64,000 nt of DNA, taken from the IMG/VR virus record IMGVR_UViG_3300025141_000016, positions 186,001-250,000 of that record; one strand, written 5' to 3'. Below, piece by piece: positions 4,451 to 21,574 of this stretch. Position 1 is the first letter of the stretch. Each line of letters opens with the position of its first letter. Under the pieces are notes generated by a model, which was not told where the DNA came from, did no database searches, and was given only the letters and a program-made list of their open reading frames with translations. Both the position numbers and the translations under genes were made by a program.

Positions 4451-4588
4451 ATGCCTATTACCGCCACCAACCGAAGAACCCTCATCCGAAAAGCTGCTTC
4501 CCTACCCGTGGGATTGGCTCGGGAGGTCCAGTCGGCTCTGGGGGGTGGGAAGCTACCTGACGAGTTCGATGAGCACAGCTTTGAATGA
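4451..4588 (+). CDS. 45-aa peptide consisting mostly of a partial tag A
   Basis: GGAGA RBS; MPITATNRRTLIRKAASLPVG...; stop overlaps ATG 4585. Confidence 0.65.
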   Translation: MPITATNRRTLIRKAASLPVGLAREVQSALGGGKLPDEFDEHSFE

Positions 4589-7500
4589 TGCCCAGGCCCT
4601 CCCATAAACGAGTCGCCCGTCGTTACGCTTCCCGCACCGCGAGTGAAGCAGAGAGGTTCCCCCACGGTCCCAATGGCCCCAAGGCCGATGAGTGGTTCAG
4701 GGCATGGAGAGCACGAATAGGCCCCTACATGAGAGGAGCCTGTTACGACTTGGCGGGGTTCCTTCACGATGAAGGCGGGTTTCCCGTATGGGGGGTGATT
4801 GATGAAGACGGTATCATCGCCCACGCCTTCGCGTACAACCCCCGCATCCGAAAGGGCTTGGATGCTCGGGGTGAGGTAGACCCCGAAGATATGATGGATG
4901 GGGTAATCGGTGCCGAAAGTGTCCGTCCCCTGACCAAGAAAGAGAACCGATCTCTGTGCTCCAGATGGGGCTCCGACGAACGTGACTTCGCCCAACAGTT
5001 CGGGAAATACCTTTGGGATTTACGGGGGAGTCGTCTCGGAGCAGCCTTACGCACCGCGACCTCTACCAAGATCCCCGCAAAGACTGTCTACGCAGGGGGG
5101 TGGGAATGGAACAAGGGAGGCTTCGCGGACTGGCCTTCATTCCGACGCAAGCCCAAAAGAGAGCAGATCGCGTGGGCGAAGGAATACGTTGGCTCTGGTA
5201 TCCGCGAGCCCGTTGAGGTCACCGTGTACTCGGACGGGGGCGTGGGGTTTACGGACGGCCACCATCGAGTCATGGCGGGAACACTGCTCGACATTGAGAT
5301 CCCCGTGCGGGTCAAGTCCCGCAACTTCGACAAAGACCTGTGGCCTGACCTCCTTGCTCTGTTGAAGGCTGGGTACACACCCAAGCAGTACAACCCGCAG
5401 GGGTGGAAGCTAACCAACTCCGGTGTGCCGCCCCTGGAGGTTGTTCGCCGTGGTCCCAACGCCGCTGACGAATGGATCATGTCGAACGAGAGGGTCAAGA
5501 CCGCAGCCCGTCCCATCCGTCTCCCGACACGGGAGATCAAGGCTCTCGCCAAGAAGTTGGCGCAGCGGCTCTACCAGTGGGGGCTGCCGAAGCCCGGTCG
5601 GGTGATCGCACAGGAGTACCTGCCTCTCACCAACGTCATGGGTGACGAGGTGGAGGTCGAGATTCTACTGACGGGTACGCCCAATAAGTGGCGTGACCCG
5701 TTCAGCAGCGAACTGGTCCAAGGCGGATTCGCTCTGACGCATAAGAGGTCCGATAATCCTTTGGTGCGGATCTTTGTGAACCCGGACTTGGGCACCCGGA
5801 CGTTTGAGATGCGACCTCGCAGGATTGTCGAGAGCGAGTTGTACGAAATCCTTGCTCACGAACTCACCCATGCCGCAGACACATGGCTGGGCAAAGGCTC
5901 GGCGGTGGGCGCACTGGAAGGGCTGGGGCCGGGTTCCCACCACAACCACCCGGCAGAGGTCAAGGCACTGATGCGGGACGTGGTGACGCACCTTGAAGAT
6001 GGCGAGTACGTCCGCGAGTTGATGGGCTACGGCATGGACTTCAACACGGCTTTCCGCGAGGCACTGAAGGAAACCCAGTGGCCGGACATTGAGCCCTACC
6101 TGACTCCGAAGAACCAGAAGACCATCCTCAAAGGGGTCTACACCCACCTCCAAGACCAAGGGCTCACCAAGGCCGCGAGCAGGACCGCTGGAGGGTTCCG
6201 TCGGATCATTGATGAGATCGAAGACAAGACAGGCTTGGAGGCCAAGGTCGAGGCCGGGGCTGACAACATCAAGATCGAGTTGAAGCGCGGGACGAAGATA
6301 GTCGGCTACTTCCGAGCCTCGACGGTAGACCCAAACAGCTTCCAATGGAAGGGGGCTCCTCTGGACTGCAAAGAGGCGTGGGGTCAGATAGGGGAGCCGC
6401 CAGTCTGGATTGTCCGAGGAGCCCTGCTGAGTTGGTGGCTCCGAGGCAAGGGGTTCGGCAAGCTGCTCTACAAGGCATTGTTCTCCCACATCGCCTCCAA
6501 GAAGGGCGTTGTGGGTCCGAACCGTTGCTCCGGGGGAAACACATCACCGGATGCACAGCGGGTCTGGAAAAGCCTACGCTCGATGTACCCGAAGCATGGT
6601 CCCTTGATCGACTTGCGGAAGATGGCATCAGCCAGCCGAGTAGCCTCCCGGTTCCGCAGGATGGAAGCGGGAATGAGGACCGTCAAAGACCTTCCTGACG
6701 ACTGGTACGTCGAGATCACCGGTTCACTGTCGAATCTCGGCATCTATCTGCTGGACGGTGATGACAACACCGTAGGAAGTTTGGACATCCACCGGACAGG
6801 GGACTTCCTCCAAATCAACGAGATTCAGGCACGTCAGGGGTGGGGGCCGCTTCTTTACGATCTGGCTATGGAAGTCGCAAACGAGTTCAATGACGAGGGA
6901 CTAATGCCCGACCGTTCCTCGGTTTCGCGTGAAGCACGGGCGGTCTGGGAGCACTACCTCAATCGCCGTTCGGACGTTGAAGCGACCCTCTTGCCAGAGT
7001 GGGTACATGAACTCGCGGGTTCAGGGCACGTTCGCACACACTTGGACCGATATGAACCTGATTCCCCCCTGTCATACTCTTACCGGAAGACCACTGGAAA
7101 CCCGTTCATGCGGCAACTGGCGCTCCAAGGTCAGTTGGAGTCTGACGATTACTCTTTCGACCTCCCACGGGCCGCCGCCAGCCGTGTCGCCTCCCGGTAC
7201 GCAGGCCGAGCCTACTGCATCTGCTGGCCGACTGACGGATTGCTCTACGTCGAGGTGCCCAGCTACGACCACCTCCGCAATCTGTTGTTGACGCAGAAAT
7301 GGCGCGGGGACGCGCATTTGCGAACGAAGGACGGCTATGTCCCGTACTTCGGTGGCGGCATCGCCTTCAGCTTCACGAAGATGCGGATGAAGGGAGTCCA
7401 CCCCGTCTGGTACATCCGCAAGGGCTTCACAAAGCAACAGGCCGTGGCCCATCTGGTGGAGGATGGCTTGTTTGTGAGCGAGCGAGACGCGCTGCGTCAC

Positions 7501-9144
7501 GCTGAAGGGGATTACCCTGGCGAGTGTGAGTGGAAAGGCAAGAAGGGCCTATCGTTTACCCCGGATGCCATCGAATACGTCTGGTTAGGTAAGCGGGCAG
7601 GCAAACCGTTCGATGAGGCGAAGGCCGAGCTTCACCAGTTCATTCCCGACCTCGACGTGCGGTCGGAGGCCCCACCTTCGGGCAACAGTCCGTGCCGAGT
7701 TGCCTCCCGGTTCCGCAGGATGGAAGCGGGGCTCCTACAAGCCCCGCCGAAACTCGTCAAAGCCGTGACCGAATGGGCACAGGCCACCTTCGCTGACCGC
7801 GCCCACCACAACGCCCTGGCCAAACAGGCCAAGTTCGACCGGACAGGAGCCGGAATCATCGGGGGTCAGGACACCCTCGATCTGTGGTTCAAGAGCATGA
7901 AGCCTTGGAAGCGCACCTCCGCTGGGAAAGGGGGTGAGGTGTCCACTACGTTCGACCTCACCGACTACCTTGATGGTTGGCGGTATCGGCACCTCTGGGA
8001 CAACCTCAATGCAGGCGAGCAACGTGCTCTCCGCAAAGGCCCTCTCCGTCCGATCACCGTGACCAACGCTTTTGATGAGGGACGTTCGGGTGCCATGGGT
8101 GCTTGGTCAGACAAGAGACATGAGTTCCAAGTGTGGCTCCCCGCCGATGTCTGGATGCCAGAAGTCATCCCCGACCTTGTGGAGAAGCACGACAAACTCA
8201 TCCCGAAAACCGTTCGCCACGAGTTGCAGCACGCCACCCAAGTCATCCTCGGTGCCTTGACGGGTCAGGATTACGGGGGCCTCCCGAAACGGAAGGTGAG
8301 GCAGCCTCACAGCATCGAGGAACAACGCCAGAAGCAGATTGAGGACAACGCATCCGCATCGCGTGAAACCTTCCGCTTTCCACCAGACACGTCCAGCCCA
8401 CGCGACGACCGACGGCGAGATCGGTATTACCGCTCTGATCTGGAGTACCAGACCTCCCTCACCGATGCCGTGGGCGATTGGGAGTCCGACTCCCTACCTC
8501 CGGTGCAACGATGGTTGGACGAGACGGACCTCAATGACCGCGACAAGGGCAAGGTGCTTCGGTGGGCTGTTCGCACCTTCGTCGGTGAAGGGCGAGCACG
8601 GTTCCCCACCCTTCCGCGTGACTTCAAACGCCCTGACTGGAACCCAGGCAAGATCAAGCCGTCCGAGTTCTTTACGCACATCAAGGGCGACCGGGAGCGG
8701 TGGGCAGATGCCGTGGCGACCTTTTACAAGGAGATCGCCCGCACCACCAAACTCGCCCGCCGTGTAGCTACCCGGTATGCGAAGCGTGACTACCCGAAAG
8801 CCGGAGGCTCCGTGAGTGGGCTGCGGGTCAAAGGGGATGCCCCCAACCAGAACTCCATCAGCGCCTCGTTCTCCGACTATGAAGTGCTCCCCGACGTGCG
8901 AGAGGTACCCCTCTCCGACTTCGATGCCGCACCACATGACATGTTCTACTCGGCAAGTGACCTGGGGAGGGTCCGAGAACTCGCGGAAGCCATCGAACAC
9001 AACGGCTGGATTGCACCTCTCATCGTGGTCATAGACGATGACCCCAAGCCGTACATTCTGGAAGGAGCACACCGACTCGCCGCACTGCACACCCTGTCGA
9101 AACGAACCTTCCCCGCCCTCGTGGTGAGAGACCTCGACGGATGA
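4585..9144 (+). CDS. polyvalent polyprotein: papain-like, ParB-like, zincin, GNAT, GNAT, unknown, zincin, ParB-like; tag-B linkers
   Basis: GACY...AHAF...LDARG; DGHHR; HELTH; LRGKGFGKLLY; QGWGPLLYDL; HELQH; LEGAHRL. Modules are separated by SRVASRF/Y, RRVATRY and [KR]TA. Confidence 0.85.
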   Translation: MMPRPSHKRVARRYASRTASEAERFPHGPNGPKADEWFRAWRARIGPYMRGACYDLAGFLHDEGGFPVWGVIDEDGIIAHAFAYNPRIRKGLDARGEVDPEDMMDGVIGAESVRPLTKKENRSLCSRWGSDERDFAQQFGKYLWDLRGSRLGAALRTATSTKIPAKTVYAGGWEWNKGGFADWPSFRRKPKREQIAWAKEYVGSGIREPVEVTVYSDGGVGFTDGHHRVMAGTLLDIEIPVRVKSRNFDKDLWPDLLALLKAGYTPKQYNPQGWKLTNSGVPPLEVVRRGPNAADEWIMSNERVKTAARPIRLPTREIKALAKKLAQRLYQWGLPKPGRVIAQEYLPLTNVMGDEVEVEILLTGTPNKWRDPFSSELVQGGFALTHKRSDNPLVRIFVNPDLGTRTFEMRPRRIVESELYEILAHELTHAADTWLGKGSAVGALEGLGPGSHHNHPAEVKALMRDVVTHLEDGEYVRELMGYGMDFNTAFREALKETQWPDIEPYLTPKNQKTILKGVYTHLQDQGLTKAASRTAGGFRRIIDEIEDKTGLEAKVEAGADNIKIELKRGTKIVGYFRASTVDPNSFQWKGAPLDCKEAWGQIGEPPVWIVRGALLSWWLRGKGFGKLLYKALFSHIASKKGVVGPNRCSGGNTSPDAQRVWKSLRSMYPKHGPLIDLRKMASASRVASRFRRMEAGMRTVKDLPDDWYVEITGSLSNLGIYLLDGDDNTVGSLDIHRTGDFLQINEIQARQGWGPLLYDLAMEVANEFNDEGLMPDRSSVSREARAVWEHYLNRRSDVEATLLPEWVHELAGSGHVRTHLDRYEPDSPLSYSYRKTTGNPFMRQLALQGQLESDDYSFDLPRAAASRVASRYAGRAYCICWPTDGLLYVEVPSYDHLRNLLLTQKWRGDAHLRTKDGYVPYFGGGIAFSFTKMRMKGVHPVWYIRKGFTKQQAVAHLVEDGLFVSERDALRHAEGDYPGECEWKGKKGLSFTPDAIEYVWLGKRAGKPFDEAKAELHQFIPDLDVRSEAPPSGNSPCRVASRFRRMEAGLLQAPPKLVKAVTEWAQATFADRAHHNALAKQAKFDRTGAGIIGGQDTLDLWFKSMKPWKRTSAGKGGEVSTTFDLTDYLDGWRYRHLWDNLNAGEQRALRKGPLRPITVTNAFDEGRSGAMGAWSDKRHEFQVWLPADVWMPEVIPDLVEKHDKLIPKTVRHELQHATQVILGALTGQDYGGLPKRKVRQPHSIEEQRQKQIEDNASASRETFRFPPDTSSPRDDRRRDRYYRSDLEYQTSLTDAVGDWESDSLPPVQRWLDETDLNDRDKGKVLRWAVRTFVGEGRARFPTLPRDFKRPDWNPGKIKPSEFFTHIKGDRERWADAVATFYKEIARTTKLARRVATRYAKRDYPKAGGSVSGLRVKGDAPNQNSISASFSDYEVLPDVREVPLSDFDAAPHDMFYSASDLGRVRELAEAIEHNGWIAPLIVVIDDDPKPYILEGAHRLAALHTLSKRTFPALVVRDLDG

Positions 9145-10478
9145 TCAAACCCTCTGCCAGCCGTGTTGCCTCCCGGTATGCGGGCCGCTCTGTCCCTCCC
9201 TTCAAGGTTCGGGATGCGGCGGCGAAGACACCTTCGGATCTGCCCGATGGGTGGTATGTGGTTGCCCGCTGGGTCGGCCCGTCGAGGTCATTCCAGTTGT
9301 ACGACGGAAAGAAAGAGGTCGGGTATATCCGAGCGACCCCGAACTCCTCCTGTGGTGGGGCCTATACGGTGCGTCAAGTATGGGCACCCTCCGGTTGGGG
9401 TCCGATGCTCTATGACCTGATGATGGAGGATGCGGGTCGTTATGGGGTGATGCCGGATCGAAGTCAGGTATCGGAAGACTCCGCTCGTGTTTGGTTCCAC
9501 TACCTCACGAAACGCCGCCGTGATGTGACCGCACACCCTTTGTGGGATGACCCCTCCATTCGTGATGATCGGGCGTGCGGCTATCATTATGAAGATACTG
9601 GTCCCGGTGTGTTTGAGTCCTTGGACTATCGGTACGTCAAGGACGGTCGCGGAGTGACGGGCTCACTGGAGCGTGAGGGCAGGCTCTTTGAAGGTGAGCA
9701 TCCCGAGTGGTCCGGTGTCCGAAAAGAAGCTGTGGCGCAGCGGTATGCGAAGCGACCCTTCGACCTCGCCATGAACGGACTGAAAGGTCTGGACGAGGGA
9801 AGGACCGTGACCCTGTACCACGGCACCACACGATCCTTCGACCGCTTTGACCTCACCAAGTCCAGGGACGAACTCGTCAACGACTTCTACGGCAAGGGGA
9901 TCTTCCTGACCCCATCCAAGAACGTCGCCTGGAAGTACGCCAACGCCAACCGGAACATCGGCCTCGACCCCAGCATCATTGGCGAACTGAAACGCAAGAA
10001 GCCCCAGGCCGGAGCCTTTCTGGAAAGCCTCTACTCCCAGGGATCCGATGCCTGGGAACCCATGCTCGCAGAAGCCAAAGCCGCAGGGCACGAACCCTAC
10101 GAGCACGAGGACTTCCTCAACGGGGTGGACGGGAACACCCTCGGTGACATAGCGGGGTACATCGAAGGGAGTGCAGTCCCACCACGCGGGGGCGGCTCAA
10201 CCAACATCTTCTCGACCAGTAGCGGTGCCCCCTACTGGCTCTACGACACCCTCGATGAAGTGGGCCTCGACTCCTCGGCGTACCGACCCAAGGTCTACAC
10301 CGTTGGGGTCACCGTACAGAACCCCCTCATCACCGCAAGCGCATCCGAAGCCCGCAAGGCAAGAGCCAATGGCTACGACAGCGTGGTCTTCCACGGCTCT
10401 CGGCTGGTCGATGGCTGGCCCGAGGTCGCCGTGTTTTCACCCAGGAACGCCAAGATCAAAAAGGTCGAGGTCGAGTAA
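9141..10478 (+). CDS. tag-B protein: GNAT plus ADP-ribosyltransferase-like (ART-PolyVal type) domain
   Basis: SASRVASRY; GWGPMLYDLMME; LYHGT...YGKGIFLT...GYDSV...EVAVF. Confidence 0.8.
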   Translation: MIKPSASRVASRYAGRSVPPFKVRDAAAKTPSDLPDGWYVVARWVGPSRSFQLYDGKKEVGYIRATPNSSCGGAYTVRQVWAPSGWGPMLYDLMMEDAGRYGVMPDRSQVSEDSARVWFHYLTKRRRDVTAHPLWDDPSIRDDRACGYHYEDTGPGVFESLDYRYVKDGRGVTGSLEREGRLFEGEHPEWSGVRKEAVAQRYAKRPFDLAMNGLKGLDEGRTVTLYHGTTRSFDRFDLTKSRDELVNDFYGKGIFLTPSKNVAWKYANANRNIGLDPSIIGELKRKKPQAGAFLESLYSQGSDAWEPMLAEAKAAGHEPYEHEDFLNGVDGNTLGDIAGYIEGSAVPPRGGGSTNIFSTSSGAPYWLYDTLDEVGLDSSAYRPKVYTVGVTVQNPLITASASEARKARANGYDSVVFHGSRLVDGWPEVAVFSPRNAKIKKVEVE

Positions 10479-10613: not shown

Positions 10614-11824
10614 CGGACCCGTAGGGTCAGGAGAAACTAACCATGTCCAAGACCATTACCGCTTCTGACCGGAGCCGATTGATTCGACTCGCTTCAACAA
10701 TGTCTGCTGGCTCTCCCGAGCGGAAGGCCATCCTCGCTGGGTTGTCAAAGACCGCTGGAGAACACCCGCTGGGCCGCATGGCAATCGTCTACTTCGATTT
10801 GATCATTGAGGCTTACAACATTGAGGAGGACGCGGAAAACGGTGACGAGTTCGCACAGAGCCTCATGGATGATGGTGGTCGAGGTATGAACAAGTTGGAG
10901 GGTGACGCTCTCAAAAACCTGTCCCGCATGTTCGGACAGCGAATCAGCAACGAGGGGCATGGCCCCGACGGCGCACTTGTCTGCAAGTTCCCAGTGAACT
11001 CGTGGGCAGAGGTCAAGAAAGCCAATGACGTAATCAACAAGAACCACACTGGCGGTGACGATAACATCGACACGGGCGTTCAGTACGTTGAGGCACGGGA
11101 CTTTCGCCTCCACCCGGAGGGCGTGGGACAAAATCAGGCTTTCTACGGTGAGCACTCCCGTGCAGAGGGTGATTGGGACGAGTGGCTGTCCGACCACAAG
11201 TAATCCCTATCGGACCCGTAGGGTCAGGAGAAACTAACCATGCCCAAGACCATTACCGCTTCTGACCGAGCCAGCTTGATCCGGCTCGCTTCCTGTCTAC
11301 CCGTAGAGCGGAAGGCAATCCTGGCTGGGCTCCAGAAGACGGCAGCCATGGAGCCGTGGGATTCCCCCGATTACGTCTTTGAAGACCCAAAGGATGAAGA
11401 TGACTACATCACTCTCTTTGAGGAAGGGACCACACGCCACTACGATGTGAACGTCTCTGGCCGCGTGGATTCAGCGAAGGATGGGCTCCTCCTACTCCAC
11501 AAGGAGTTCGGTCGTGGGGGTAAGGAAAGCCGCGACTTTGAGGGTCAGTACCTCTGGGGGACAGGCTACTCCATCACAGCGATCCCCCCAAACAATCTGT
11601 CCTATGAGCGGTGGCATAACGACAAGGCCCACTTGGCAAAGATCCACAAGGTTCTGGACAGGATCAAGAAGATGCCAGGAGTCAAAAAGGTCAGCTTGGA
11701 GGAACGGCCCGACAGTGCAGACCTGCATAAGAAACAAGGGCAGGCCATGAAGCGGTGGGTCGCCAAGGGTCGGACCCTGCGAACTGCGAAGAAGACACCC
11801 TATCGGACCCGTAGGGTCAGGAGA
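10608..11824 (+). repeat. three exact 27-nt leader repeats CCCTATCGGACCCGTAGGGTCAGGAGA
   Basis: Copies at 10608-10634, 11205-11231 and 11798-11824, each followed by ATG and a tag-A coding sequence; internal hairpin GACCC-GTA-GGGTC. Confidence 0.95.
10643..11203 (+). CDS. tag-A protein, hypothetical cargo
   Basis: MSKTITASDRSRLIRLASTMSAGSPERKAILAGLSKTA. Confidence 0.85.
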   Translation: MSKTITASDRSRLIRLASTMSAGSPERKAILAGLSKTAGEHPLGRMAIVYFDLIIEAYNIEEDAENGDEFAQSLMDDGGRGMNKLEGDALKNLSRMFGQRISNEGHGPDGALVCKFPVNSWAEVKKANDVINKNHTGGDDNIDTGVQYVEARDFRLHPEGVGQNQAFYGEHSRAEGDWDEWLSDHK

Positions 11825-12244
11825 TACACCATGCCCAAGACCCTCACCGCAACTGACCGATCCCGATTGATCCGGCTCGCTTCCACTATGGCTGCTGGCT
11901 CTCCCGAACGGAAAGCGATCCTCGCGGGCTTGGAGAAGCAAGGGGGTGCGTCGAAGACGGCCTACAGCGACAAGTTTGGTCTTCGGTTCAACTTTCGGGA
12001 CGGTTTCTCATTCACGACGGTCCCTGTTGACCCCCCCTACAACCAGACATATTCGGGCTTTATCCTGATAAAGAAGCCCGGACGGGTGAAGGCGTACAGA
12101 GCGGCGATGGCCTACGTCAACCAGAACCGTAGGGAGATCGAACGCATGAAAAGAACAAAAGATGTTCTCGGTGCCATCAACGACTACGCCCGTCAGGTGA
12201 GCGGTAAGGAGCCCTACTGGCACCGATACCTGATGCCAGACTGA
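11240..12244 (+). CDS. double tag-A protein (in-frame fusion of two cassettes; internal start at 11831)
   Basis: Tag A at the N-terminus and again at ATG 11831, which has its own leader repeat and RBS. Confidence 0.85.
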   Translation: MPKTITASDRASLIRLASCLPVERKAILAGLQKTAAMEPWDSPDYVFEDPKDEDDYITLFEEGTTRHYDVNVSGRVDSAKDGLLLLHKEFGRGGKESRDFEGQYLWGTGYSITAIPPNNLSYERWHNDKAHLAKIHKVLDRIKKMPGVKKVSLEERPDSADLHKKQGQAMKRWVAKGRTLRTAKKTPYRTRRVRRYTMPKTLTATDRSRLIRLASTMAAGSPERKAILAGLEKQGGASKTAYSDKFGLRFNFRDGFSFTTVPVDPPYNQTYSGFILIKKPGRVKAYRAAMAYVNQNRREIERMKRTKDVLGAINDYARQVSGKEPYWHRYLMPD

Positions 12245-12259
12245 TTAGGAGATCCCACC

Positions 12260-12784
12260 ATGCCCAAGACCATTACCGCTGCCGACCGATCCCGATTGAT
12301 CCGGCTCGCTTCCTCGATGCCCGTAGGCTCCGATGAGCGGAAAGCCATCCTCGCTGGGTTGAGGGTTGCTGACCGCGCTATCGACAAAGCCGTGGACTAT
12401 CTGGTGAAGGCCCAGCGTATTCTCTCGGGAGTCCCCGGATGGGGCACTGCTCCGTATGGGGGGTATGACCGCTCCCTGACCGAGTTGATCAAGGTCTTAC
12501 GGGCCGGACCCAACAAGAAGGCTTCAGCTTCGTTGAAGGATGTGCTGCGAAAGTGGCCCGAGTTTGCCCCCGAGATCCAAAAGGAACTGCGAGGGCTGCG
12601 GGCGGCGTTGCGAGGCGACCCCGACTTCGGGCGCGTGAGTAATGCCCTCATACAGATCCAGATGCGGCTGGAAGACGACCACCGCAGAGACCCAGCGGCT
12701 TTCCATGCCCGCGCACCCTTCAACAAAGCACTCGCTGACTTTGCAAAGGCCGAGTACGAACACAAGACGGGCAATAAGTGGTAG
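12260..12784 (+). CDS. tag-A protein, hypothetical cargo
   Basis: MPKTITAADRSRLIRLASSMPVGSDERKAILAGLRVA. Confidence 0.85.
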   Translation: MPKTITAADRSRLIRLASSMPVGSDERKAILAGLRVADRAIDKAVDYLVKAQRILSGVPGWGTAPYGGYDRSLTELIKVLRAGPNKKASASLKDVLRKWPEFAPEIQKELRGLRAALRGDPDFGRVSNALIQIQMRLEDDHRRDPAAFHARAPFNKALADFAKAEYEHKTGNKW

Positions 12785-12797
12785 GCAGCGTAACGCC

Positions 12798-13082
12798 CTA
12801 CGCCTCTCCAACCACGTCCGAAGCCTTGTACTGGATGAGGGCATCAATCTCGTCACGGAACTCGATGAGTTCCGTCAGCGTGAACACACGAGCATCCTTC
12901 AACACACTCTCGGGGAACACCGCGATGGTCGATTGCGTGTCCTCATGGATGGAGGTCGCGATCTCACGAACCTCCTCCACCTCGTAGGGAGTAGCATCAT
13001 CCGCTACCACCAACACGATGAGGTCATACCGACCAGCCCGTAAAACCATCTGCCGAACCGCTGCTTGGCAAGCATCACCCAT
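12798..13082 (-). CDS. hypothetical protein
   Basis: Member of a tightly packed minus-strand run. Confidence 0.55.
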   Translation of the reverse strand: MGDACQAAVRQMVLRAGRYDLIVLVVADDATPYEVEEVREIATSIHEDTQSTIAVFPESVLKDARVFTLTELIEFRDEIDALIQYKASDVVGEA

Positions 13083-13097
13083 TGACCAACCCCGTCT

Positions 13098-13427
13098 CTA
13101 TACCTGATCGGGAACGATAGACAGCCTACCTCTGCCGTCCTCGACTGTAGAGCACCGCTCGCATGGCTTCTCCGGGCCACACGTCTCACAACGACCAGCC
13201 AAAGCCCACGGGAAGGTGCCCTGCGGGTTCTGGGAAGCAACCTGAAGGTGACCGCCAGACGCACGGTACTCGTCCGCTGTCACCAAGGCTTGCGCTAACT
13301 CCTCCCCCAACCGCCGTACCTCACCCTCCTGGGCCGGGTCCGTCATGTCGAACAACAGGTGAACACTCTCCTCGTCAGAACGCACACGCTCCGGGTTTAC
13401 AAACACCAACTTCATCCATCTGCTCAT
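13098..13427 (-). CDS. hypothetical protein with C-terminal Zn-ribbon
   Basis: CETC...CERC; GAGG RBS. Confidence 0.65.
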   Translation of the reverse strand: MSRWMKLVFVNPERVRSDEESVHLLFDMTDPAQEGEVRRLGEELAQALVTADEYRASGGHLQVASQNPQGTFPWALAGRCETCGPEKPCERCSTVEDGRGRLSIVPDQV

Positions 13428-13430
13428 CCC

Positions 13431-13775
13431 TCACCTCTCCTGCCCCTCCGGGCCGTTTCTCTCCAACAGCGGAGGGTCGATACGGACAACCTCCCATTGG
13501 TACTCTTCTATGGCTGATACAGGGTCAGGGTCAATGGCGACCATCTCGGCCTTCCACTCACGACCTCCCTGGAGGGCAAGGTCCATCCCGACAAACTCGT
13601 AGGGGAGTTCACCGGAAGCGTGCTCGGTGGACCACACCACCTTGTAGGTGGATGGTCGCTGCTCCTCGACCTCGGCATACCCGAGCATCTTCTCCATCAC
13701 CATGTCGTCCAAGTCCTTTTGGCAAGCCTCGCCCATGATGGACTCGGGACCACCGAACATCGTTCGCTTACTCAT
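13431..13775 (-). CDS. hypothetical protein
   Basis: Packed minus-strand run; start uncertain. Confidence 0.55.
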   Translation of the reverse strand: MSKRTMFGGPESIMGEACQKDLDDMVMEKMLGYAEVEEQRPSTYKVVWSTEHASGELPYEFVGMDLALQGGREWKAEMVAIDPDPVSAIEEYQWEVVRIDPPLLERNGPEGQER

Positions 13776-13971
13776 CCCGCTCATCCTCGACCTCATCGGC
13801 GTTGTACTGGCGCACCGTCCCCAGGACGTGCTGCCCGTCCAGCCATAGGTTGACGACCTCTCGCCCGTTGGGGAGCGTTTCGCGTTCAAGCAGCCGCATA
13901 CGCCGCCCGCCATAAGGGCGCACCCCTCGCTTGATGCGGACGGTCGTGCTCGGTTTGATCTTACTCATCAC
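13768..13971 (-). CDS. small beta-barrel-like hypothetical protein
   Basis: GGAG RBS; overlaps both neighbours. Confidence 0.55.
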   Translation of the reverse strand: MMSKIKPSTTVRIKRGVRPYGGRRMRLLERETLPNGREVVNLWLDGQHVLGTVRQYNADEVEDERDE

Positions 13972-14711
13972 TCACTCCTTCGATCCATGCAGCCAGGATG
14001 AACCCAGCCCAGGTTCCCACCACCCCACACGGGAATCACTCCGTGCGTGGGGTCCAGTAAGGACTCCCCACAGAAAGGACACCGCGTAGGCGAATGGTCG
14101 GCCAAGTCCGCAAGGCTCTCCGCAACCGCAAGACCCGAACGCCACACCCCCAACAACAACTCCGTCTGATACCGGTGTGAACCGTCGGGTCGGTCAAAGA
14201 GGGGCAACGGCAACAACGGGGACACATGAGGTCGCTGTTTGGACCTGACGTAGAGGGGTATCCCCCTCCGAGGGTCCAAGTGATAGACGTGCGGAGCCAT
14301 CTCCGTGGCCAACCGCCTTCCCACGTCAGGAAGGTGGTGGCTCATGGCGTACTCCCGATCAGTGACCGTGAAGGACACCGAGTAGATGGGAGCATCCTGT
14401 TCCGTAGACACCACCTGTTCCGTAGACACCACACGGAGGGTGAAGACCGTAGCGGGGATCCGCTCCCGATACTCCACGTCCAACCGGGTCGTGAGTGTGT
14501 CCCGGTACTTCAAGTGGCCGTGCCCAAAAAGCCTGTTGCCAGATCCGTGCCTGACTTGGACCTCATCACCCCACTTGTCTTGGTGGGCTTCACCGAAACC
14601 GCCCCACATCGCACGGAGTACCCCTTCGATGAGGGGAACCCAGAGCCCTTCCCGCTCGTCGGGAAGAGGGCGAGTGGCGGGGCCTGGGGTCGGGGTGACC
14701 GTGGGGTCCAT
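13968..14711 (-). CDS. hypothetical protein with C-terminal CxxC...HxxC
   Basis: Start at ATG 14711 after GAGGA; CPFC...HPGC. Confidence 0.65.
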   Translation of the reverse strand: MDPTVTPTPGPATRPLPDEREGLWVPLIEGVLRAMWGGFGEAHQDKWGDEVQVRHGSGNRLFGHGHLKYRDTLTTRLDVEYRERIPATVFTLRVVSTEQVVSTEQDAPIYSVSFTVTDREYAMSHHLPDVGRRLATEMAPHVYHLDPRRGIPLYVRSKQRPHVSPLLPLPLFDRPDGSHRYQTELLLGVWRSGLAVAESLADLADHSPTRCPFCGESLLDPTHGVIPVWGGGNLGWVHPGCMDRRSE

Positions 14712-15061
14712 GGGAACGTCCTCTGCTGGGTTCTGGGTTCCTCTACCTGTACCGGCCAACACCCCCTCTCGCACCCCCCTGTAGGAGTCCCCGCCCCCGA
14801 AACGCAATACTTGAAACGTACTTGTGACTACTCGATACATGGCCCATGTGACAGTCACAATCGTGAATGAAGTATTGGGGCTCCTGGGTATCGGGTTTCG
14901 CCCACCGTTAGCGGGGGGTTGGGGAGGCCGAATACAAGGTGGTTGTGATTATCACGAACACGATCCCTCCCTGTGAGGCCCGCCAATCCAGAGAACAAGT
15001 CAAGCCCCCGGAGATTTTTCTGGCATGGGGTTTGCATGGGAAAATACTGTATTGGGTAAAT

Positions 15062-15157
15062 GTAACTGTTAGGTTTGCAAACGTAACTACATGGTATGCA
15101 AACGTAACTGTATTGGTTGCGTTTGTGACAGTCACGATTGGCGTTCGTGACTGTCAC
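15062..15157. repeat. phased array of 11-bp palindromes GTRACWGTYAC (five units, some degenerate)
   Basis: Units start at 15062, 15083, 15104, 15125 and 15147 (spacing 21, 21, 21, 22); a lone copy at 14848. Confidence 0.85.
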
Positions 15158-15175
15158 ACCCAAAACCCCAAACGC

Positions 15176-15211
15176 AAAAAACCCCCGACCGCCACGGAGG
15201 CAGTCGGGGGT
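15176..15211 (-). terminator. intrinsic terminator
   Basis: CCCCCGACTGCC-TCCGT-GGCGGTCGGGGG followed by TTTTTT on the minus strand. Confidence 0.8.
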
Positions 15212-15281
15212 CGGGGGTTGTTGGGGGTTGGGTCAGCGGCGGCTGTCTCGGGTCAGTCCGAGGGTCCGTCAGTTCGTGGGC

Positions 15282-15581
15282 CTACTCGTAGTGCGGAGTC
15301 TCGGTGGGGAAGGTCCGAGCGGGGTGGTCTTCGACGTAGACCTCGACGGCGACCCCGCCGAGGACAGAGTAAATGTCTCCCTCCGCGTGATCGGCGTACC
15401 GCTGTTTGAGTTGGTTGACCATGGTGCCCACGCGCCCATCGTCGGGACCGGTGGGGGTGAACGGGAGCGGCACGGACGCGAGGGGTTCCCCAGCGTTGTA
15501 CCACCACCCGCCTTCCTCGGGTCCACCGAAATGGCGGGTGACCGCGTAGGCGTTGACGTATGTAGAGGTTGCGGTAGGCAT
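15282..15581 (-). CDS. hypothetical phage protein (GGPEEGGWWY motif)
   Basis: GGAGG RBS; FGGPEEGGWWY motif, which I recall from phage hypothetical proteins (not searched). Confidence 0.75.
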   Translation of the reverse strand: MPTATSTYVNAYAVTRHFGGPEEGGWWYNAGEPLASVPLPFTPTGPDDGRVGTMVNQLKQRYADHAEGDIYSVLGGVAVEVYVEDHPARTFPTETPHYE

Positions 15582-15640
15582 GAGAGCCCTCCAGTTTGAA
15601 AGTGTGTCAAACACCGAATGTGAATACTCGGTTCGTAAAC

Positions 15641-15694
15641 GTGACTGTCACAAGGGGTGCCTGTAACAGTCACAAGTGCATCTGTGACTGTTAC
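15641..15694. repeat. phased palindrome array (three units)
   Basis: GTGACTGTCAC 15641, GTAACAGTCAC 15663, GTGACTGTTAC 15684. Confidence 0.85.
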
Positions 15695-15759
15695 AAAGTG
15701 GGACCGCCCAATACACCAAAGGCCCCCTCCAGGGGGGAGGGGGACCGGTGAGGGGGGGA

Positions 15760-16200
15760 TCAGGCAGCGGACTCCTCGTCCTCCGCAGCCGCGACCTCGG
15801 TGGCACTGACCACTGAAACCGACAGAGCCGGGAAGGTCACCTTGCCCTTGCAGTCGGTCAGGGTCGGTCCCTTGACCGCAGCGATAGCGACCTTGGCCCT
15901 CTTCTTGAGGGACGCGATCAGCTTGGGGTCGGCGGTGAGGGCTTCGCGGGTGAGGGAATCGACGGTCACGCCGTTGAGGTGGCTCAATGCCGCAGCCAGG
16001 AGCGTCCAGGGGTCAGCCTTGGCCACGATGGGCTGGGTGTAGTCATCACCGCAACGGGTAGTGGCGACCGTGTGCAGGGTGACGATCTCGTCCACGTCGT
16101 TATCCCCGACGGGGAGGTCAGCGCGGGTCGCGGATTTCGCAGCGGCGAGCGCCTTATGAAGTGCCGCGATGGTCGCGGGGGAGAGGGAAGTGAGGTCCAT
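15760..16200 (-). CDS. hypothetical protein
   Basis: ATG 16200 after hairpin and GGAGA; has its own class E promoter. Confidence 0.75.
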   Translation of the reverse strand: MDLTSLSPATIAALHKALAAAKSATRADLPVGDNDVDEIVTLHTVATTRCGDDYTQPIVAKADPWTLLAAALSHLNGVTVDSLTREALTADPKLIASLKKRAKVAIAAVKGPTLTDCKGKVTFPALSVSVVSATEVAAAEDEESAA

Positions 16201-16274
16201 GAGAAGTCTCCATTGGCCCGTCATTCGGGCTCGTGGGGGGTGTTTTGTGTGGGTAGCGGGGCTCCCTACACTCC

Positions 16275-16307
16275 TATACGGAGAAGCAAGGGGGAGTTGA
16301 ACCCCCC
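16275..16307 (-). promoter_or_regulatory. class E promoter GGGGGGTTCAAC-N15-CGTATA
   Basis: One of eight copies with invariant spacing. Confidence 0.8.
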
Positions 16308-16328
16308 TCCGTCGAGAAAGTTGAGGGT

Positions 16329-16610
16329 TTAGAACGGCATGTCTTGGTCGTCTGCGGCCCAGGCGGGGATGACGGGTTGGTCCTGGGGCACCACAATGTC
16401 ATCCCCCGACGGCGTGTACCCGTAGATTTCGGCGGCAGTGGGCTCCCGCTCGTCCTCGTCCGGTTCGGGTCCGTAGACCACAGCAGCCAGGAGGTCGTGG
16501 CACCGTGCGAGTTCGGCTTCCTGCTGCTCTGGGAGCAGGGAGGGTGAGCGGTAGCCAGCGAGGGCGAAGTACGCCTCGCGGATGGTGGAGAGCAGTTCAG
16601 CGTGGGTCAT
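16329..16610 (-). CDS. hypothetical protein
   Basis: GGAG RBS; acidic C-terminus ending DDQDMPF. Confidence 0.65.
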   Translation of the reverse strand: MTHAELLSTIREAYFALAGYRSPSLLPEQQEAELARCHDLLAAVVYGPEPDEDEREPTAAEIYGYTPSGDDIVVPQDQPVIPAWAADDQDMPF

Positions 16611-16789
16611 GTGGCTCCGGGGGTGGTCTGTTCGGGCGAAGGTGCGTCAGGGTGCCATCCACACTTGAAGCAGCCCTTCCTCGTGTAGATGCCCACCTCT
16701 CCTTTGGGGAGGAAGGTCACGACGTTCTTGATGGCCTTTTTCTTACCGCACTGTTGGCACTTGGTCTTGATGGTCATGGTGCCGGTCAT
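16607..16789 (-). CDS. small Zn-ribbon protein
   Basis: CQQC...CFKC. Confidence 0.55.
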   Translation of the reverse strand: MTGTMTIKTKCQQCGKKKAIKNVVTFLPKGEVGIYTRKGCFKCGWHPDAPSPEQTTPGAT

Positions 16790-16807
16790 GGGAGGTTCCA
16801 GAGAGGG

Positions 16808-16984
16808 TCAAAGGGTGTAGTCGATCTCGACCACCCCCCGCTCGGGGGCGGGGTCCGGTCGTTCCAGCACAGGACGGGGAGGCACAGGACGAGGTGCATA
16901 GAGGGGGAGCCGTCGGCGCTCGCTCTCGCGTTCCTCACGCTCGCGGCGTTCGCGCTCGATGATGGCTGGGTGGATGTGGGTCAT
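16808..16984 (-). CDS. 58-aa charged protein (below the ORF-track cutoff)
   Basis: MTHIHPAIIERERREREERESERRRLPLYAPRPVPPRPVLERPDPAPERGVVEIDYTL; GGAGG RBS directly after a class E promoter. Confidence 0.7.
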   Translation of the reverse strand: MTHIHPAIIERERREREERESERRRLPLYAPRPVPPRPVLERPDPAPERGVVEIDYTL

Positions 16985-17001
16985 AGTAGGGCCTCCACCC
17001 T

Positions 17002-17034
17002 TATACGGAGATAGGGGGGTGAGTTGAACCCCCC
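17002..17034 (-). promoter_or_regulatory. class E promoter
   Basis: GGGGGGTTCAAC-N15-CGTATA. Confidence 0.8.
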
Positions 17035-17052
17035 AAAACCAAGTATTCGGGT

Positions 17053-17138
17053 GTGACAGTCACGTTTTGGGCGCGGTTTTGCCTGTGACAGTCACGTTTG
17101 AAAACGTGACTGTCACGTTTAGGGGGTGTGACAGTCAC
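17053..17138. repeat. palindrome array (four perfect GTGACWGTCAC)
   Basis: Units at 17053, 17085, 17106 and 17128. Confidence 0.9.
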
Positions 17139-17156
17139 GTTTAGGGGGTGTGGGGG

Positions 17157-17453
17157 TCAAGCGGTCCCTGCGGTGGCCTCGACCTCTTCCCAGCCGAAGG
17201 AAGCGCATCGGAGGACACGTCCATCCGACAGGCGGATGCGGTCACCGACGGAGGTGGAGCGGCATCCCTCACCAGGGAAGGTCGAGGTGACCAGAGCGTT
17301 CTCCCACCAGTAGTGTTCGATGGTGTTGGTCAGTTCAAAGACGCGGGGGTAGTCCGCGTCGGGCAGGTCCACATCAGCGACGTGGATGAACTCGGTGGGC
17401 TCCGGCCCGGACCCGAAGGTGGGGCGAGTGGCGTGAAAGACTGCGATGGACAT
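17157..17453 (-). CDS. YodL-like domain protein
   Basis: VFELTN...RSTSVGD...FGWEEV resembles the YodL RS[LM]SVGD motif; ATG 17453. Confidence 0.6.
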   Translation of the reverse strand: MSIAVFHATRPTFGSGPEPTEFIHVADVDLPDADYPRVFELTNTIEHYWWENALVTSTFPGEGCRSTSVGDRIRLSDGRVLRCASFGWEEVEATAGTA

Positions 17454-17514
17454 GGGCGCTCCTGTTGGCCTCTCGATGAGGCTCGTGGGGATGAGGGAAG
17501 GTTCTCTCACCCCC

Positions 17515-17547
17515 TATACGGAGATAGGAGGCCGAGTTGAACCCCCC
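17515..17547 (-). promoter_or_regulatory. class E promoter
   Basis: GGGGGGTTCAAC-N15-CGTATA. Confidence 0.8.
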
Positions 17548-17548
17548 C

Positions 17549-17762
17549 TGTCGTAAATAGGTAGAGCGCCGTCGGCCTTACTCAACCAGAAAGGTCTTTC
17601 GCCCCACCGGAGAGTAGCCTCGGGCGGGTGTCGTAAATCGGAAGGGCACCGTCGGGCTTACTCAACCGGAAAGGTCTTTCGCCCCACCGAGGAGTAGCCT
17701 CGGGTGTCGTAGATAGGCAGAGCCCCGTTGGGCTTACTCAACCGGAAAGGTCTTTCGCCCCA
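17549..17762. repeat. tandem repeat of a 76-80 bp unit (about 2.7 copies), possibly a structured RNA
   Basis: Units at 17549, 17629 and 17705 share CTTACTCAACCRGAAAGGTCTTTCGCCCCA; inverted partial copy at 18035-18060. Confidence 0.85.
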
Positions 17763-18052
17763 ACTTGCGGGGGGTGGAACCACAGGTCCAGTTCTGGAAC
17801 CACAGGTCCAGGGGCGCTCCCCCGTTGTTGTAAAAACCCCTGATCGGGGTGTCATCAGAACGGCGTGCGCGAAAACCCCAGTGAAGGCAAGGGTTTAGCG
17901 AATCGGGCGGCCCCGAGGACATCCCCGAGACCTCGGACGACATCGCTGTGGGAGGCTTGTGGGGTCAGATCGGTGACCCCACGGGTGAGACTACCGCCGT
18001 CTCGGACGGCAGCCGTTCCCCGTGGAACACGGGTCAACGGTGCCCTTCCGAT

Positions 18053-18574
18053 CTACGACACCCACTCGCCCCCACCGATGAAGGCCACGTCGGACCACAT
18101 CTCGGTGTTCAGGTCCAGTTGTCCTGGCACTATCCCACCGAGCGCGGTGTTCAGGTCGCGAATGATGTTGAAGGCGAGGTCGAAGTCTACGTCCTGAATC
18201 GCCCGTAGGGCTCTGCGGAGCCACGGAGCCATGGAGAGCCCTTCCTCCTCGGCCTGCTCTATCTCCTCTTGGGAGAAGACCGAGGGGACTTCCTTGCCGG
18301 TGTCTACATCGGTGCCGTTCACCTCGACGTTCCACCACCACCACACCTCACGGGACAGCCGGAGGTAGGGGTGGGTCTGGAGGTGGCCCCGGATGAGGGC
18401 ATCTCCTCCCACGTCCCTGACGAGCAGGGTCCGTCGGAACGTGCCGAGGGTCGAATCGGGCGGGAAGCTGTCGAGGTTTGCGGCACTCTCCAGCCGTTCG
18501 GCGTGCCGGGTTTCCAGCACGGTGTTGATCTCCATCTCGGAGAGGGGGAACAGGACGCGGATAGGGGTAGTCAT
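18053..18574 (-). CDS. hypothetical protein, paralog of 3772-4275
   Basis: GGAGG RBS; FPLSEMEI...PWLRRALRAI...MWSDV. Confidence 0.75.
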   Translation of the reverse strand: MTTPIRVLFPLSEMEINTVLETRHAERLESAANLDSFPPDSTLGTFRRTLLVRDVGGDALIRGHLQTHPYLRLSREVWWWWNVEVNGTDVDTGKEVPSVFSQEEIEQAEEEGLSMAPWLRRALRAIQDVDFDLAFNIIRDLNTALGGIVPGQLDLNTEMWSDVAFIGGGEWVS

Positions 18575-18641
18575 CGGGCACCTCCACAGGGGTAGACGCA
18601 GGGGGGTGTCCACTTCGCACACTTGGGGGGCCAGAAACGAC

Positions 18642-19268: not shown

Positions 19269-20150
19269 CTACAGCGCGATGGCGCACTCCGTGTGGAAGA
19301 CTCCACGCCCTTCAACATGGGCAGCGGTGGCGTTGGCCTCGATGGTGCCCTTGCATCCCTCTGCCGAGCAGACGCAGGCGAAGGGGACCACGACGGTCGA
19401 GTAGTCAACCGAGGAAGTGGTGGCCTCGGGAGTCGGAGCCATGGACGTTTTCAGGGCAGCTACCAACCGCGCACGTTCGGCAGCGAGTTCGGCCTCGGCC
19501 TTGGCGACCTCGGCAGCGAACTCAGCATCGAGTTCGGAGGCCACCGTCGCCAGGGTGGTGATGGTCGATGCTTGGCACAGCCCAGCCAGAGGGCACCCCT
19601 CGCACTGCGAAGACCGTGAGGACCACAGGCTGAAGCAGTGGGTGTTGTCGATGGCCACGCGCCGGAGGTCAGCCTCCGTAGCGTAGGACCCGGCAGTCAC
19701 GGCACCGACGGGGGGCAGGTAAGCCATCCCCGAATCCTCGGTGATCACGGAGATCGCCGCTGGGGCTTCCTCGGTGGCTTCCTCGGTGACCATCTCGGTC
19801 AGGGTGACCGCTGCCATCGTCTCTACCTCGGTAGCCTCGGTGACTTCCGGTGCTGGCGCAGCAGCCAACTCGGAGGCCAAGGCGTAGTACCCGCGACGTG
19901 GGTTGACGGCCATACCGTCCTTCTTCAAGCGCCCACCCGCGAGGGTGACGGCTCGGTGTCCGGCGAAGTAGGGCTTGCCCCGCTTCATCTTCGTGCCCCA
20001 GGTACCCCAGCCAGGGAAATCGGTCAGGGACTCGATATGGGCGATCACGTCGCGGAACCGTACTTCCTCCCCTCGGGGTCCGAGGGCGCGGAGCGCGGCC
20101 AGGACATAGGGCATCCAAGCCGTGGTTTCCAGGGTGGTCGGGAAGTTCAT
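19269..20150 (-). CDS. Mrr-N-like winged-helix protein with Cys-rich C-terminal domains
   Basis: VLAALRALG...RLKKDG...PRRGYYAL; CEGCPL...C; CVC...HTEC. Confidence 0.6.
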   Translation of the reverse strand: MNFPTTLETTAWMPYVLAALRALGPRGEEVRFRDVIAHIESLTDFPGWGTWGTKMKRGKPYFAGHRAVTLAGGRLKKDGMAVNPRRGYYALASELAAAPAPEVTEATEVETMAAVTLTEMVTEEATEEAPAAISVITEDSGMAYLPPVGAVTAGSYATEADLRRVAIDNTHCFSLWSSRSSQCEGCPLAGLCQASTITTLATVASELDAEFAAEVAKAEAELAAERARLVAALKTSMAPTPEATTSSVDYSTVVVPFACVCSAEGCKGTIEANATAAHVEGRGVFHTECAIAL

Positions 20151-20226
20151 GGGGTGTCTCCAGTTGCCTCGCTCGATGCGGGTCATGGGGATGGGGTGAA
20201 AGGGTGCGGGGACGCCCCTACACTTC

Positions 20227-20259
20227 TATACGGAGAAGCAAGGGGGGGTTGAACCCCCC
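20227..20259 (-). promoter_or_regulatory. class E promoter
   Basis: GGGGGGTTCAAC-N15-CGTATA. Confidence 0.8.
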
Positions 20260-20271
20260 TGCCTGTTGGTT

Positions 20272-21489: not shown

Positions 21490-21574
21490 TGGGAGTCTCC
21501 AGTTGGCCTCTCGATGAGGCATAGGGAAGATGAAAGGGAACAGGATGGGGGGGTGTGCTCACCCCCTGCACCCA

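Follow-up and report, generated by a model that had tools for sequence, protein, structure and literature searches.

An eight-module polyprotein and its two-module partner in an uncultured tailed phage, with a short peptide tag at module junctions

Polyvalent proteins carry two to fifteen unrelated, mostly catalytic domains per polypeptide, and passages of Iyer et al. 2017 (PMC5512222) propose that they are packaged and delivered together with the DNA, some of them being processed by metallopeptidase (MPTase) domains of their own. The same passages describe GNAT domains adjacent to the ADP-ribosyltransferase (ART) domain ART-PolyVal, and a survey of jumbo phages published in 2021 considered that the ART and GNAT domains of injected polyvalent proteins may redirect host machinery. 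Here we analyse a locus of this type in a window of 64,000 nucleotides, bases 186001-250000 of the IMG/VR virus record IMGVR_UViG_3300025141_000016 (G000 below), a linear record of 297 kb with a CheckV completeness of 67%. The locus encodes a polyprotein of eight modules, P1, and a partner of two modules, P2, and most of the module junctions hold a short peptide, tag A, that recurs throughout the genome. The bacteriophage that shares its name with the polyprotein is always written phage P1.

Other phage systems come close to this locus from different sides. In T4, diverse internal defence proteins enter the scaffolding core by means of a short leader that they share, the capsid-targeting sequence (CTS), which the prohead protease afterwards cuts off (PMC3012670), and giant phages such as SPN3US likewise shorten head and ejection proteins at the N-terminus, by propeptides of 20-254 residues. 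The head-packaged anti-restriction protein DdrB of the Dar system of phage P1 joins ParB/Srx and zincin domains in one chain, as polyprotein P1 does, and processing before packaging has been proposed for it. Polyprotein P1, however, has no match among GenBank phages (megablast, tblastn), the sole match from the locus being that of the C-terminal module of P2 to one uncultured 485-kb phage (54% identity). With the published polyvalent proteins, P1 and P2 share the assembly of unrelated catalytic domains in one phage polypeptide, the core repertoire of zincin MPTase, ART, GNAT and ParB/Srx domains, the joining of GNAT to ART-PolyVal in P2 and an extensive mosaicism between related phages. They differ in having no MuF, SNF2, methylase or LPD domain, and in the genome-wide leader tag at their junctions.

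Module layout and folds of P1 and P2

P1 and P2 are intact reading frames, and the stop of the first and the start of the second share 4 nt (ATGA overlap). The first-pass annotation of the window, made from the letters alone, had read them as an eight-module polyprotein with a two-module partner. Both open reading frames proved exact, and all the motifs then quoted occur in the order given, those of P1 at residues 51 (GACY), 79 (AHAF), 92 (LDARG), 224 (DGHHR), 425 (HELTH), 924 (GGIAFSF), 979 (GECEW), 1212 (HELQH) and 1493 (EGAHRL). Module borders were taken from an exhaustive HMMER search with residues 1-1200 of P1, which gave 1258 proteins at E<=1e-3. The matches cluster in sharp blocks (residues 22-147, 150-304, 301-531, 529-697, 681-867, 870-1040 and 1033 onward) that agree with the proposed layout, and every block is also known as a separate protein of 120-350 residues or in another order in other metagenomic polyproteins. 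Recombined examples are P0002 (M3-M4-M7-ART, 999 residues), P0016 (M4-M2), P0018 (M2 with an M3-type module), P0033 (M6 with an M7-like module) and P0019 (M5 with a Cys/His domain). As judged from these homologue boundaries rather than from motif reading, the layout is one of eight plus two modules, M1 to M8 in P1 and P2-N and P2-C in P2 (Table 1). They measure about 120-340 residues, lie nearly all outside existing Pfam models and comprise three GNAT-fold, two ART-fold and two ParB/Srx modules, one supported and one motif-level zincin and one candidate Cys peptidase. The fold calls of eight of the ten are supported, those of M1 and M7 rest on motifs, and none was refuted. P1 is also present, 100% identical, on a second IMG/VR contig of 150 kb (L003, IMGVR_UViG_3300002514_003933), which is thus the same phage, assembled independently.

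Among the GNAT-fold modules, the AlphaFold2 model of M5, built on a 24-sequence alignment, has a predicted local distance difference test (pLDDT) score of 93.2. Its best 50 Foldseek matches in the PDB all belong to the GNAT superfamily (probability 0.93-1.0), and in VIA the best match is GCN5 (Z 8.6), with 488 chains at Z>=5. Its nearest neighbours in the ESM Atlas are phage-only proteins without a Pfam family (template-modelling score, TM, 0.77), followed by RimI-like GNATs (TM 0.55); RimI and tRNA-acetylating toxins are found among the structural neighbours of the GNAT modules. A PDB profile search with M5 gave no meaningful sequence match. P2-N is 40% identical to residues 682-803 of P1 (E 2e-16) and retains the invariant GWGP..YD..E and PDR..VS positions of M5, and M4 is linked to M5 by hhalign (probability 97%, E 1e-10), its own profile matching phosphinothricin N-acetyltransferase weakly over motif A (E 0.14). 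This motif, the pyrophosphate-binding loop Q/R-x-x-G-x-G/A, reads R-G-K-G-F-G in M4, and M5 and P2-N keep both of its Gly (G55 and G57, invariant) with a first position that varies. The three modules are alike in fold to known GNATs (RimI-like, phage polyvalent, phiKMV Rac), and their Gly-rich beta4-alpha3 loop, RGKGFG in M4 and xxxGWG in M5 and P2-N, sits at the pyrophosphate-binding position. Cellular GNATs are more distant (TM about 0.4-0.55, vs 0.77 to the phage-only neighbours), and the modules described here have extra C-terminal strands. Altogether, M4, M5 and P2-N adopt, according to model, profile and sequence comparisons, the GNAT fold, from which an acyltransferase activity is predicted.

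The AlphaFold2 model of M6 (pLDDT 93.3) matched only ART-fold structures in the PDB by Foldseek, with DarT, CteC, Tpt1/KptA and pierisin as the best. In VIA, where Tpt1 scored Z 8.2 and DarT1 Z 7.4, the best 25 rows are all ART-fold (Z 5.2-8.2) and span residues about 10-165 of 173. The six best matches in the Swiss-Prot part of the AlphaFold database are DarT, the ESM Atlas gave AbiGi (0.62), DUF2971 (0.56) and DarT (0.55), and BFVD yielded uncharacterised viral proteins only. Most of the M6 domain superposes with the DarT/Tpt1 (KptA)/AbiGi branch (VIA Z 6.5-8.2, atlas TM 0.55-0.62), from which M6 differs in having only ~160 residues and motifs of its own, YCIC, AH.RT, GGGIAF and ECEW. In its family, GGGIAF, GV.P.W and ECEW are invariant and AH.RT is conserved and at least near-invariant. 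As modelled, M6 is an ART-fold module nearest to DarT, Tpt1 and AbiGi, with a predicted use of NAD+; DarT and Tpt1, its nearest solved relatives, act on nucleic acids (DNA or RNA). The ART module of P2, P2-C, matched PF18760 (ART-PolyVal) at E 1.2e-10 and 42.7 bits, above the cut-off of 31.2, in an alignment limited to positions 2-49 of the 140 of the profile. Its identity to residues 744-999 of P0002 amounts to 80%, and an alignment with P0002 and P0004 shows conservation of the His of LYHGT (H227) and of the Glu of PEVAVF (E428). In the second ART-PolyVal of the window, the catalytic Glu column has N.

The two ParB/Srx-like modules were recognized through profiles. M2 matched a ParB-like nuclease family of PHROG (phrog_26387, E 9e-5) and the ParB/Srx-fold protein SbnI (E 0.005), and the G, both H and the R of its DGHHR motif are invariant. 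M8 matched phrog_1033 (ParB, E 4e-8) and reached 15.1 bits with Pfam ParB_N, under the cut-off of that model; with ParB segments in three large proteins (P0010, P0011 and P0012) it shares 38-60% identity. By these matches M2 and M8 are ParB/Srx-like, although nucleotide hydrolysis by them would be a guess, since a DNase or an NTP-binding role is equally possible for the superfamily. Features of the DdrB-like ParB subfamily are a lineage-specific Asp/Asn where strand 2 ends and an additional helix with a Tyr.

In the alignment of M3 (25 sequences) H126, E127, H130, N155 and E159 are invariant and D133 is near-invariant, and sub-threshold matches to Peptidase_M91 appear in 8 of the 25 members, together with single ones to M48, SprT-like, M76, M10 and M90. 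An HExxH followed three residues later by Asp, with a Glu on the next segment, as found in M3, is given in passages of PMC5512222 as a feature of the phage-type MPTase clade. These invariant residues and recurrent weak matches mark M3 as a probable zincin at the sequence level. As a solo gene of 270 residues with 71% identity, M3 occurs in a different phage (L004, IMGVR_UViG_3300025810_000004, 7911-8723), a few kb upstream of large reading frames that may, by eye, be terminase and portal. The alignment of M7 (8 sequences) shows RHELQHATQ and, 71 residues downstream, a conserved Glu in D.EYQT; L175, Q180 and E248 are invariant. A common family for M3 and M7 could not be demonstrated, as hhalign spans the HExxH helix only (probability 5%). 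M7 found no support in the PDB, Pfam or the atlas; PDB profile searches with M3 and M7 gave no meaningful match, and the pentatricopeptide-repeat (PPR) and cystatin rows of the PDB profile searches were spurious.

M1 has two homologues, P0037 and P0161, and C36, H63 and D76 of the segment are conserved in the resulting three sequences (~62% identity); no Pfam match was obtained. An atlas lead to YunG was dropped after no match to its hidden Markov model appeared anywhere in the genome. Comparisons by hhalign with the C39_2 peptidase of G000 (287254-288507) and with look-alike C...GHAW...D domains at the C-termini of P0019 and of the protein at G000 28689-30617 gave probabilities <1%. These look-alikes (P0019 residues 195-298 and the second C-terminus) are small domains of the pattern GxCY...VHG...GHAW.E...V.D...H.GPW that resemble M1 by eye, not significantly.

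Compared with the first-pass annotation, the GNAT calls for M4 (by hhalign) and M5 (by model, Foldseek and VIA), the resemblance of the P2 GNAT to the second one of P1, the ParB calls for M2 and M8 and the ART call for P2 all hold, and its guarded proposal that M6 might be ART-like is upheld by the model and its structural matches. The Foldseek check that it had suggested, run on the M5 and M6 models, returned GNAT and ART matches, respectively. Of the two zincins it had named, M3 stands, whereas M7 has the motif but no fold or family match; similarly, the Cys-His-Asp motif of M1 is conserved, but no statistical link joins this module to any peptidase. The chemistry that had been deduced is largely borne out at the level of folds, save for the papain-like call on M1.

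Tag A at the junctions and across the genome

Tag A, which can be written [AP]S[AP]S-RVA-x-R-[YFW], is a leader of roughly 10-15 residues found at residues 9, 685, 867, 1038 and 1393 of P1 and at residue 8 of P2, with a degenerate copy at residue 199 of the latter. In a crude set of 264 gene calls of G000, the loose pattern gave 32 matches vs 3.2 +/- 1.8 in shuffled proteins, and the strict pattern 26 copies in 19 proteins, which lie at N-termini (residues 7-22), at internal junctions or a few residues from C-termini. The tag is also present in 35 of the 161 proteins of the set made of P1 and its metagenomic relatives, where 16 of 47 instances fall within the first 30 residues, and it often stands at the N-terminus of solo modules (P0014, P0018, P0019, P0034). 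In the 26 genomic copies all four codons occur for Val and for Ala, each Arg position shows four to five different codons, and Ser is drawn from both of its codon families; with codons so scrambled, what is conserved, and under selection, is the peptide, not the DNA. A DNA regulatory or recombination element acting genome-wide is ruled out by this variety, DNA-similar copies being limited to P1 and P2.

A comparison with a related phage shows how the locus changes. On either side of the P1/P2 locus, the window is syntenic with L021, the contig of P0002, most of the flanking proteins being 65-88% identical, whereas at the locus itself L021 encodes one single 999-residue protein, M3-M4-M7-ART, so that the syntenic phages differ by the gain or loss of whole modules exactly at tag A. 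In the window, 37-nt direct repeats that are 97% identical (6635-6671 and 7694-7730) lie 1059 nt apart, in frame, and bracket M5 and M6, and a second pair of 37-nt tag repeats, 86% identical, is found at 7172-7208 and 9151-9187. The M4/M7 junction of L021, ...ASAS-RVATRF-RRREAGLLQAPP, is the product expected from in-frame recombination between the 97% identical copies, and its M7/ART junction merges the M7/M8 tag with the internal tag of P2. Standalone M6 proteins, in turn, terminate in ...PC[RK], where P1 has SPC-RVASRF. With such junction patterns, a tag plus a module behaves as a cassette.

The closest parallel to the tag is offered by Alt and the internal proteins of T4, which are diverse effectors, one of them an ART, with only a short peptide in common. 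The CTS is, however, strictly N-terminal and ends in an (L/I)xE cleavage site, whereas tag A is Arg-rich, has no Glu that is conserved and is found inside proteins and close to their C-termini as well. The passages on linkers, cleavage and processing in PMC5512222 contain no description of such a tag, and within a limited literature search the genome-wide system is apparently undescribed.

Table 1. Coordinates of P1, P2, their modules and tags, and of related genes (window positions unless G000 is indicated)
Feature	Residues	Coordinates	Strand	Description	Evidence
P1	1-1519	4585..9144	+	polyvalent polyprotein, 8 modules	intact ORF, ATG start; homologue-defined blocks
Tag A, P1 N-terminus		4597..4629	+	PSHK-RVARRY-A	
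M1	22-147	4648..5025	+	putative Cys-His-Asp (papain-like) module	motif only
M2	150-304	5032..5496	+	ParB/Srx-like, DGHHR	phrog_26387, alignment A6, SbnI profile match
M3	305-531	5497..6177	+	zincin-like metallopeptidase, HELTHAAD...NxPxE	alignment A5, weak peptidase matches
M4	532-680	6178..6624	+	divergent GNAT-like, LRGKGFGK (motif A)	alignment A2, hhalign to M5
Tag A, M4/M5 junction		6625..6672	+	ASAS-RVASRF-RRMEAG; left arm of 37-nt direct repeat	
M5	698-862	6676..7170	+	GNAT-fold, phage-specific family	AlphaFold2, Foldseek, VIA, atlas
Tag A, M5/M6 junction		7171..7209	+	AAAS-RVASRY-AGR	
M6	876-1034	7210..7686	+	ART-fold, DarT/Tpt1/AbiGi-like; AH.RT, GGGIAF, ECEW	alignment A1, AlphaFold2, structure searches
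Tag A, M6/M7 junction		7687..7731	+	SPC-RVASRF-RRMEAG; right arm of 37-nt direct repeat	
M7	1050-1388	7732..8748	+	HExxH module, presumed zincin	alignment A4, motif only
Tag A, M7/M8 junction		8749..8784	+	KLAR-RVATRY-AK	
M8	1402-1519	8788..9141	+	ParB N-terminal-like, EGAHRL	phrog_1033
P2	1-445	9141..10478	+	partner, 2 modules	intact ORF, ATG start
Tag A, P2 N-terminus		9150..9188	+	PSAS-RVASRY-AGR; DNA 86% identical to M5/M6 copy	
P2-N	17-190	9189..9710	+	GNAT-fold, M5 paralogue	identity to M5, alignment A3
Degenerate tag A, P2 internal junction		9723..9755	+	KE-AVAQRY-AKR	
P2-C	206-445	9756..10475	+	ART-PolyVal module (LYHGT ... PEVAVF)	Pfam PF18760
Tag B gene		10643-11203	+	directly downstream of P2	no PHROG match
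Tag B gene	23, 223	11240-12244	+	directly downstream of P2	no PHROG match
Tag B gene		12260-12784	+	directly downstream of P2	no PHROG match
Tag B gene		34411-35208	-		
Tag B gene		35205-35558	-		
Tag B gene		36015-37886	-		
Second polyvalent protein	1247 aa	45505-49248	+	tag A at residue 580	
Tag B gene		60244-60693			
Tag B gene		G000 279784-280104			
Tag B gene		G000 285824-287254			

Targeting, processing or joining: how the tag may be read

Architecture, domain repertoire and phage origin place P1 and P2 in the polyvalent proteins, and we consider it rather probable that they are polyvalent proteins in the sense of Iyer et al. 2017 that bear a targeting or processing tag and are ejected with the DNA. 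The phage would make them as two co-translated strings of small, independently folding enzymes, in which tag A would serve as an address and/or processing label, in the manner of capsid targeting in T4; the head protease or the scaffold would be its most plausible reader among the components of the phage that could act in trans. The tag would recruit its cargo to the assembling head and would perhaps mark cuts, made by the head protease (G000 19549-21045) or by the zincins of P1 itself, that release single enzymes. P1 would then be delivered as single enzymes, or cut into them, and be ejected with the DNA, and host proteins and nucleic acids could be modified early. A targeting or processing role for tag A is what we infer by analogy with the T4 leader, and delivery at injection, which the first-pass annotation had assumed, is plausible in view of the published polyvalent proteins (PMC5512222, PMC7824862) and of the leader tag shared with proteins that flank the head genes. 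As to its purpose, disabling host defence, as then proposed, is one possibility among several, and host takeover or competition between phages fits the domains equally well. Parallels for host takeover are Alt and Mod of T4 and the acetyltransferase Rac of phiKMV.

Several observations weigh against this interpretation. The genes of P1 and P2 lie ~165 kb from the head module amid unannotated genes. Tag A lacks the Glu-type site of the T4, phiKZ or SPN3US proteases, its copies a few residues from C-termini would be odd for a propeptide, and the M1/M2, M2/M3 and M3/M4 junctions show no full tag, only [KR]TA[AS]-like remnants. On the side of the enzymes, GNAT and ART folds by themselves are no proof of activity. 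No Pfam match at E<=1 to GNAT families was obtained for M4, M5 or P2-N, nor any Pfam match at that level for M6, including DarT, PTS_2-RNA and AbiGi, for which the PDB profile search was also empty. M7 is a presumed zincin and M1 a possible papain-like module, both at the level of motifs.

The tag could alternatively be a recombination-tolerant joint or short helix between domains, with no targeting function, in a polyprotein that acts uncleaved, as do the virion RNA polymerase of N4 and ArdC/TraC1. The module indels of syntenic phages exactly at the tags are what such a joint would produce, the near-identical tag DNA of P1 and P2 (37 nt, 97% and 86%) could drive in-frame homologous recombination, and some polyvalent proteins are delivered unprocessed, according to passages of PMC5512222. 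A pure linker would be unexpected, however, at the extreme N-termini of so many single-domain proteins (the 16 of 47 instances mentioned above) or near C-termini, and the scrambling of tag codons genome-wide with the peptide kept points to a reader of the peptide rather than to a DNA homology patch. In our opinion this alternative is unlikely. We regard as similarly improbable that P1 processes itself without involvement of the head protease, its modules M3, M7 and perhaps M1 cutting at the junction motifs either ahead of packaging or once the protein has been ejected. P1 does contain two modules with HExxH and one candidate Cys-His-Asp module, there is the precedent of DdrB of phage P1, and Iyer et al. 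(PMC5512222) propose such processing for MPTase-bearing polyvalent proteins. However, most tagged proteins of G000 have no detectable peptidase domain, so that a trans-acting reader would be needed anyway, P2 is tagged yet has no peptidase, and M3 also stands by itself in the tagged protein P0014, which suggests cargo rather than a processor. Finally, that tagged proteins are made in the infected cell and dock through the tag to a common hub (a chaperone encoded by the phage, a scaffold, a factor for import into a compartment or a machine of the host) where the enzymes are concentrated would agree with the distance of P1 and P2 from the structural genes, with their proximity to genes for nucleic-acid enzymes (UvrD-like helicase, polynucleotide-kinase-like protein, methyltransferase homologues) and with the varied placement of the tag (N-terminal, internal or C-terminal), which short linear docking motifs can also show, but several tagged genes are interleaved with head protease, scaffold-like and capsid genes, the ART, ParB, MPTase, nucleotidyltransferase and NUDIX repertoire is that of injected polyvalent proteins and no hub candidate was identified, and we give this scenario little credit.

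Other tagged proteins and implications for phage biology

G000 belongs to a tailed phage, with a major head protein at 23342-24226 (phrog_2522, E 9e-55) and a head maturation protease at 19549-21045 (phrog_18299, E 1.3e-12), the latter identified through PHROGs; an HK97-type protease (PF04586) is absent. Genes for tag A proteins flank those for the head protease, the scaffold-like protein and the capsid; the upstream group (11563-18583) directly adjoins them and the downstream group (28689-32925) begins at a distance of a few kb. In G000, tag A is also carried by, among others, a nucleotidyltransferase of PolyA_pol type, a NUDIX protein, a protein that matches ParB_N weakly, a C39-like peptidase and a second ART-PolyVal. 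A protein of 1255 residues (G000 14816-18583), encoded just upstream of the head protease gene, has a topoisomerase-IB-like segment after GRVVAKYQGKKEVP, and this RVA(A)KFQKKK form of the tag also precedes the topoisomerase-IB modules of P0007, P0009, P0039 and P0127. A highly acidic repeat protein of 458 residues (EEASDEEEAKGKKAR...), without a family match, is encoded between the genes for the head protease and the capsid (G000 21055-22431); it is probably the scaffold, and its charge is complementary to the Arg-rich tag A.

The second polyvalent protein of the window has its ART-PolyVal at residues 745-901 (E 9.5e-12), and its residues 861-1084 are 27% identical to P1 480-685, that is, to the end of M3 and M4; a UvrD-like helicase gene (window 41056-44637) adjoins it. 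The immediate neighbour genes of P1 and P2 have no PHROG match and no annotation. The three downstream of P2 each start with a second shared peptide, tag B ([RS]xLIR[LK]AS..P.GS[DE]ER[KR]xIL[AS][AG]L, about 30 residues, often followed by KTA[AS]; LIRLAS..P.GS.ERKAILAGL in these three genes). It has 10 occurrences, mostly near N-termini, and in L021 the gene that follows P0002 matches it at its N-terminus too. The three tag B genes 3' of P2 are possibly part of the same cargo set. The sequence [KR]TA[AS] itself appears 26 times in G000 vs 9.4 +/- 3.0 in shuffles, tends to follow tag A or tag B, is found in P1 at residues 17 and 305 and could be the point at which the chain is in fact cleaved or hinged.

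More tentatively, and as an idea that we put forward with less conviction than the delivery of P1 and P2 itself, tags A and B may label some thirty unrelated enzymes as capsid cargo in a clade of huge phages and set the cut sites of their polyproteins, so that tag plus module would be the evolutionary unit and the in-frame exchange of cassettes at the tags would rebuild the arsenals. Polyvalent proteins are regarded as the first weapons that a phage delivers, and the sorting, packaging and release of their domains have been little studied beyond phage P1 and T4. In this regard, the locus is a clean natural experiment: its ten modules are compact, and nothing but indels of whole modules sets the syntenic relative apart. 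Pfam at present lacks models for two families that are confidently assigned here, one of GNAT fold and restricted to phages, the other a small ART family like DarT/Tpt1, and both are candidates for new host-modifying or anti-defence activities. A tag recurring on some 20 proteins could, moreover, define the cargo set of an uncultured phage of more than 300 kb and, if the label system is true, the injected proteome of uncultured phages would become readable from their sequences.

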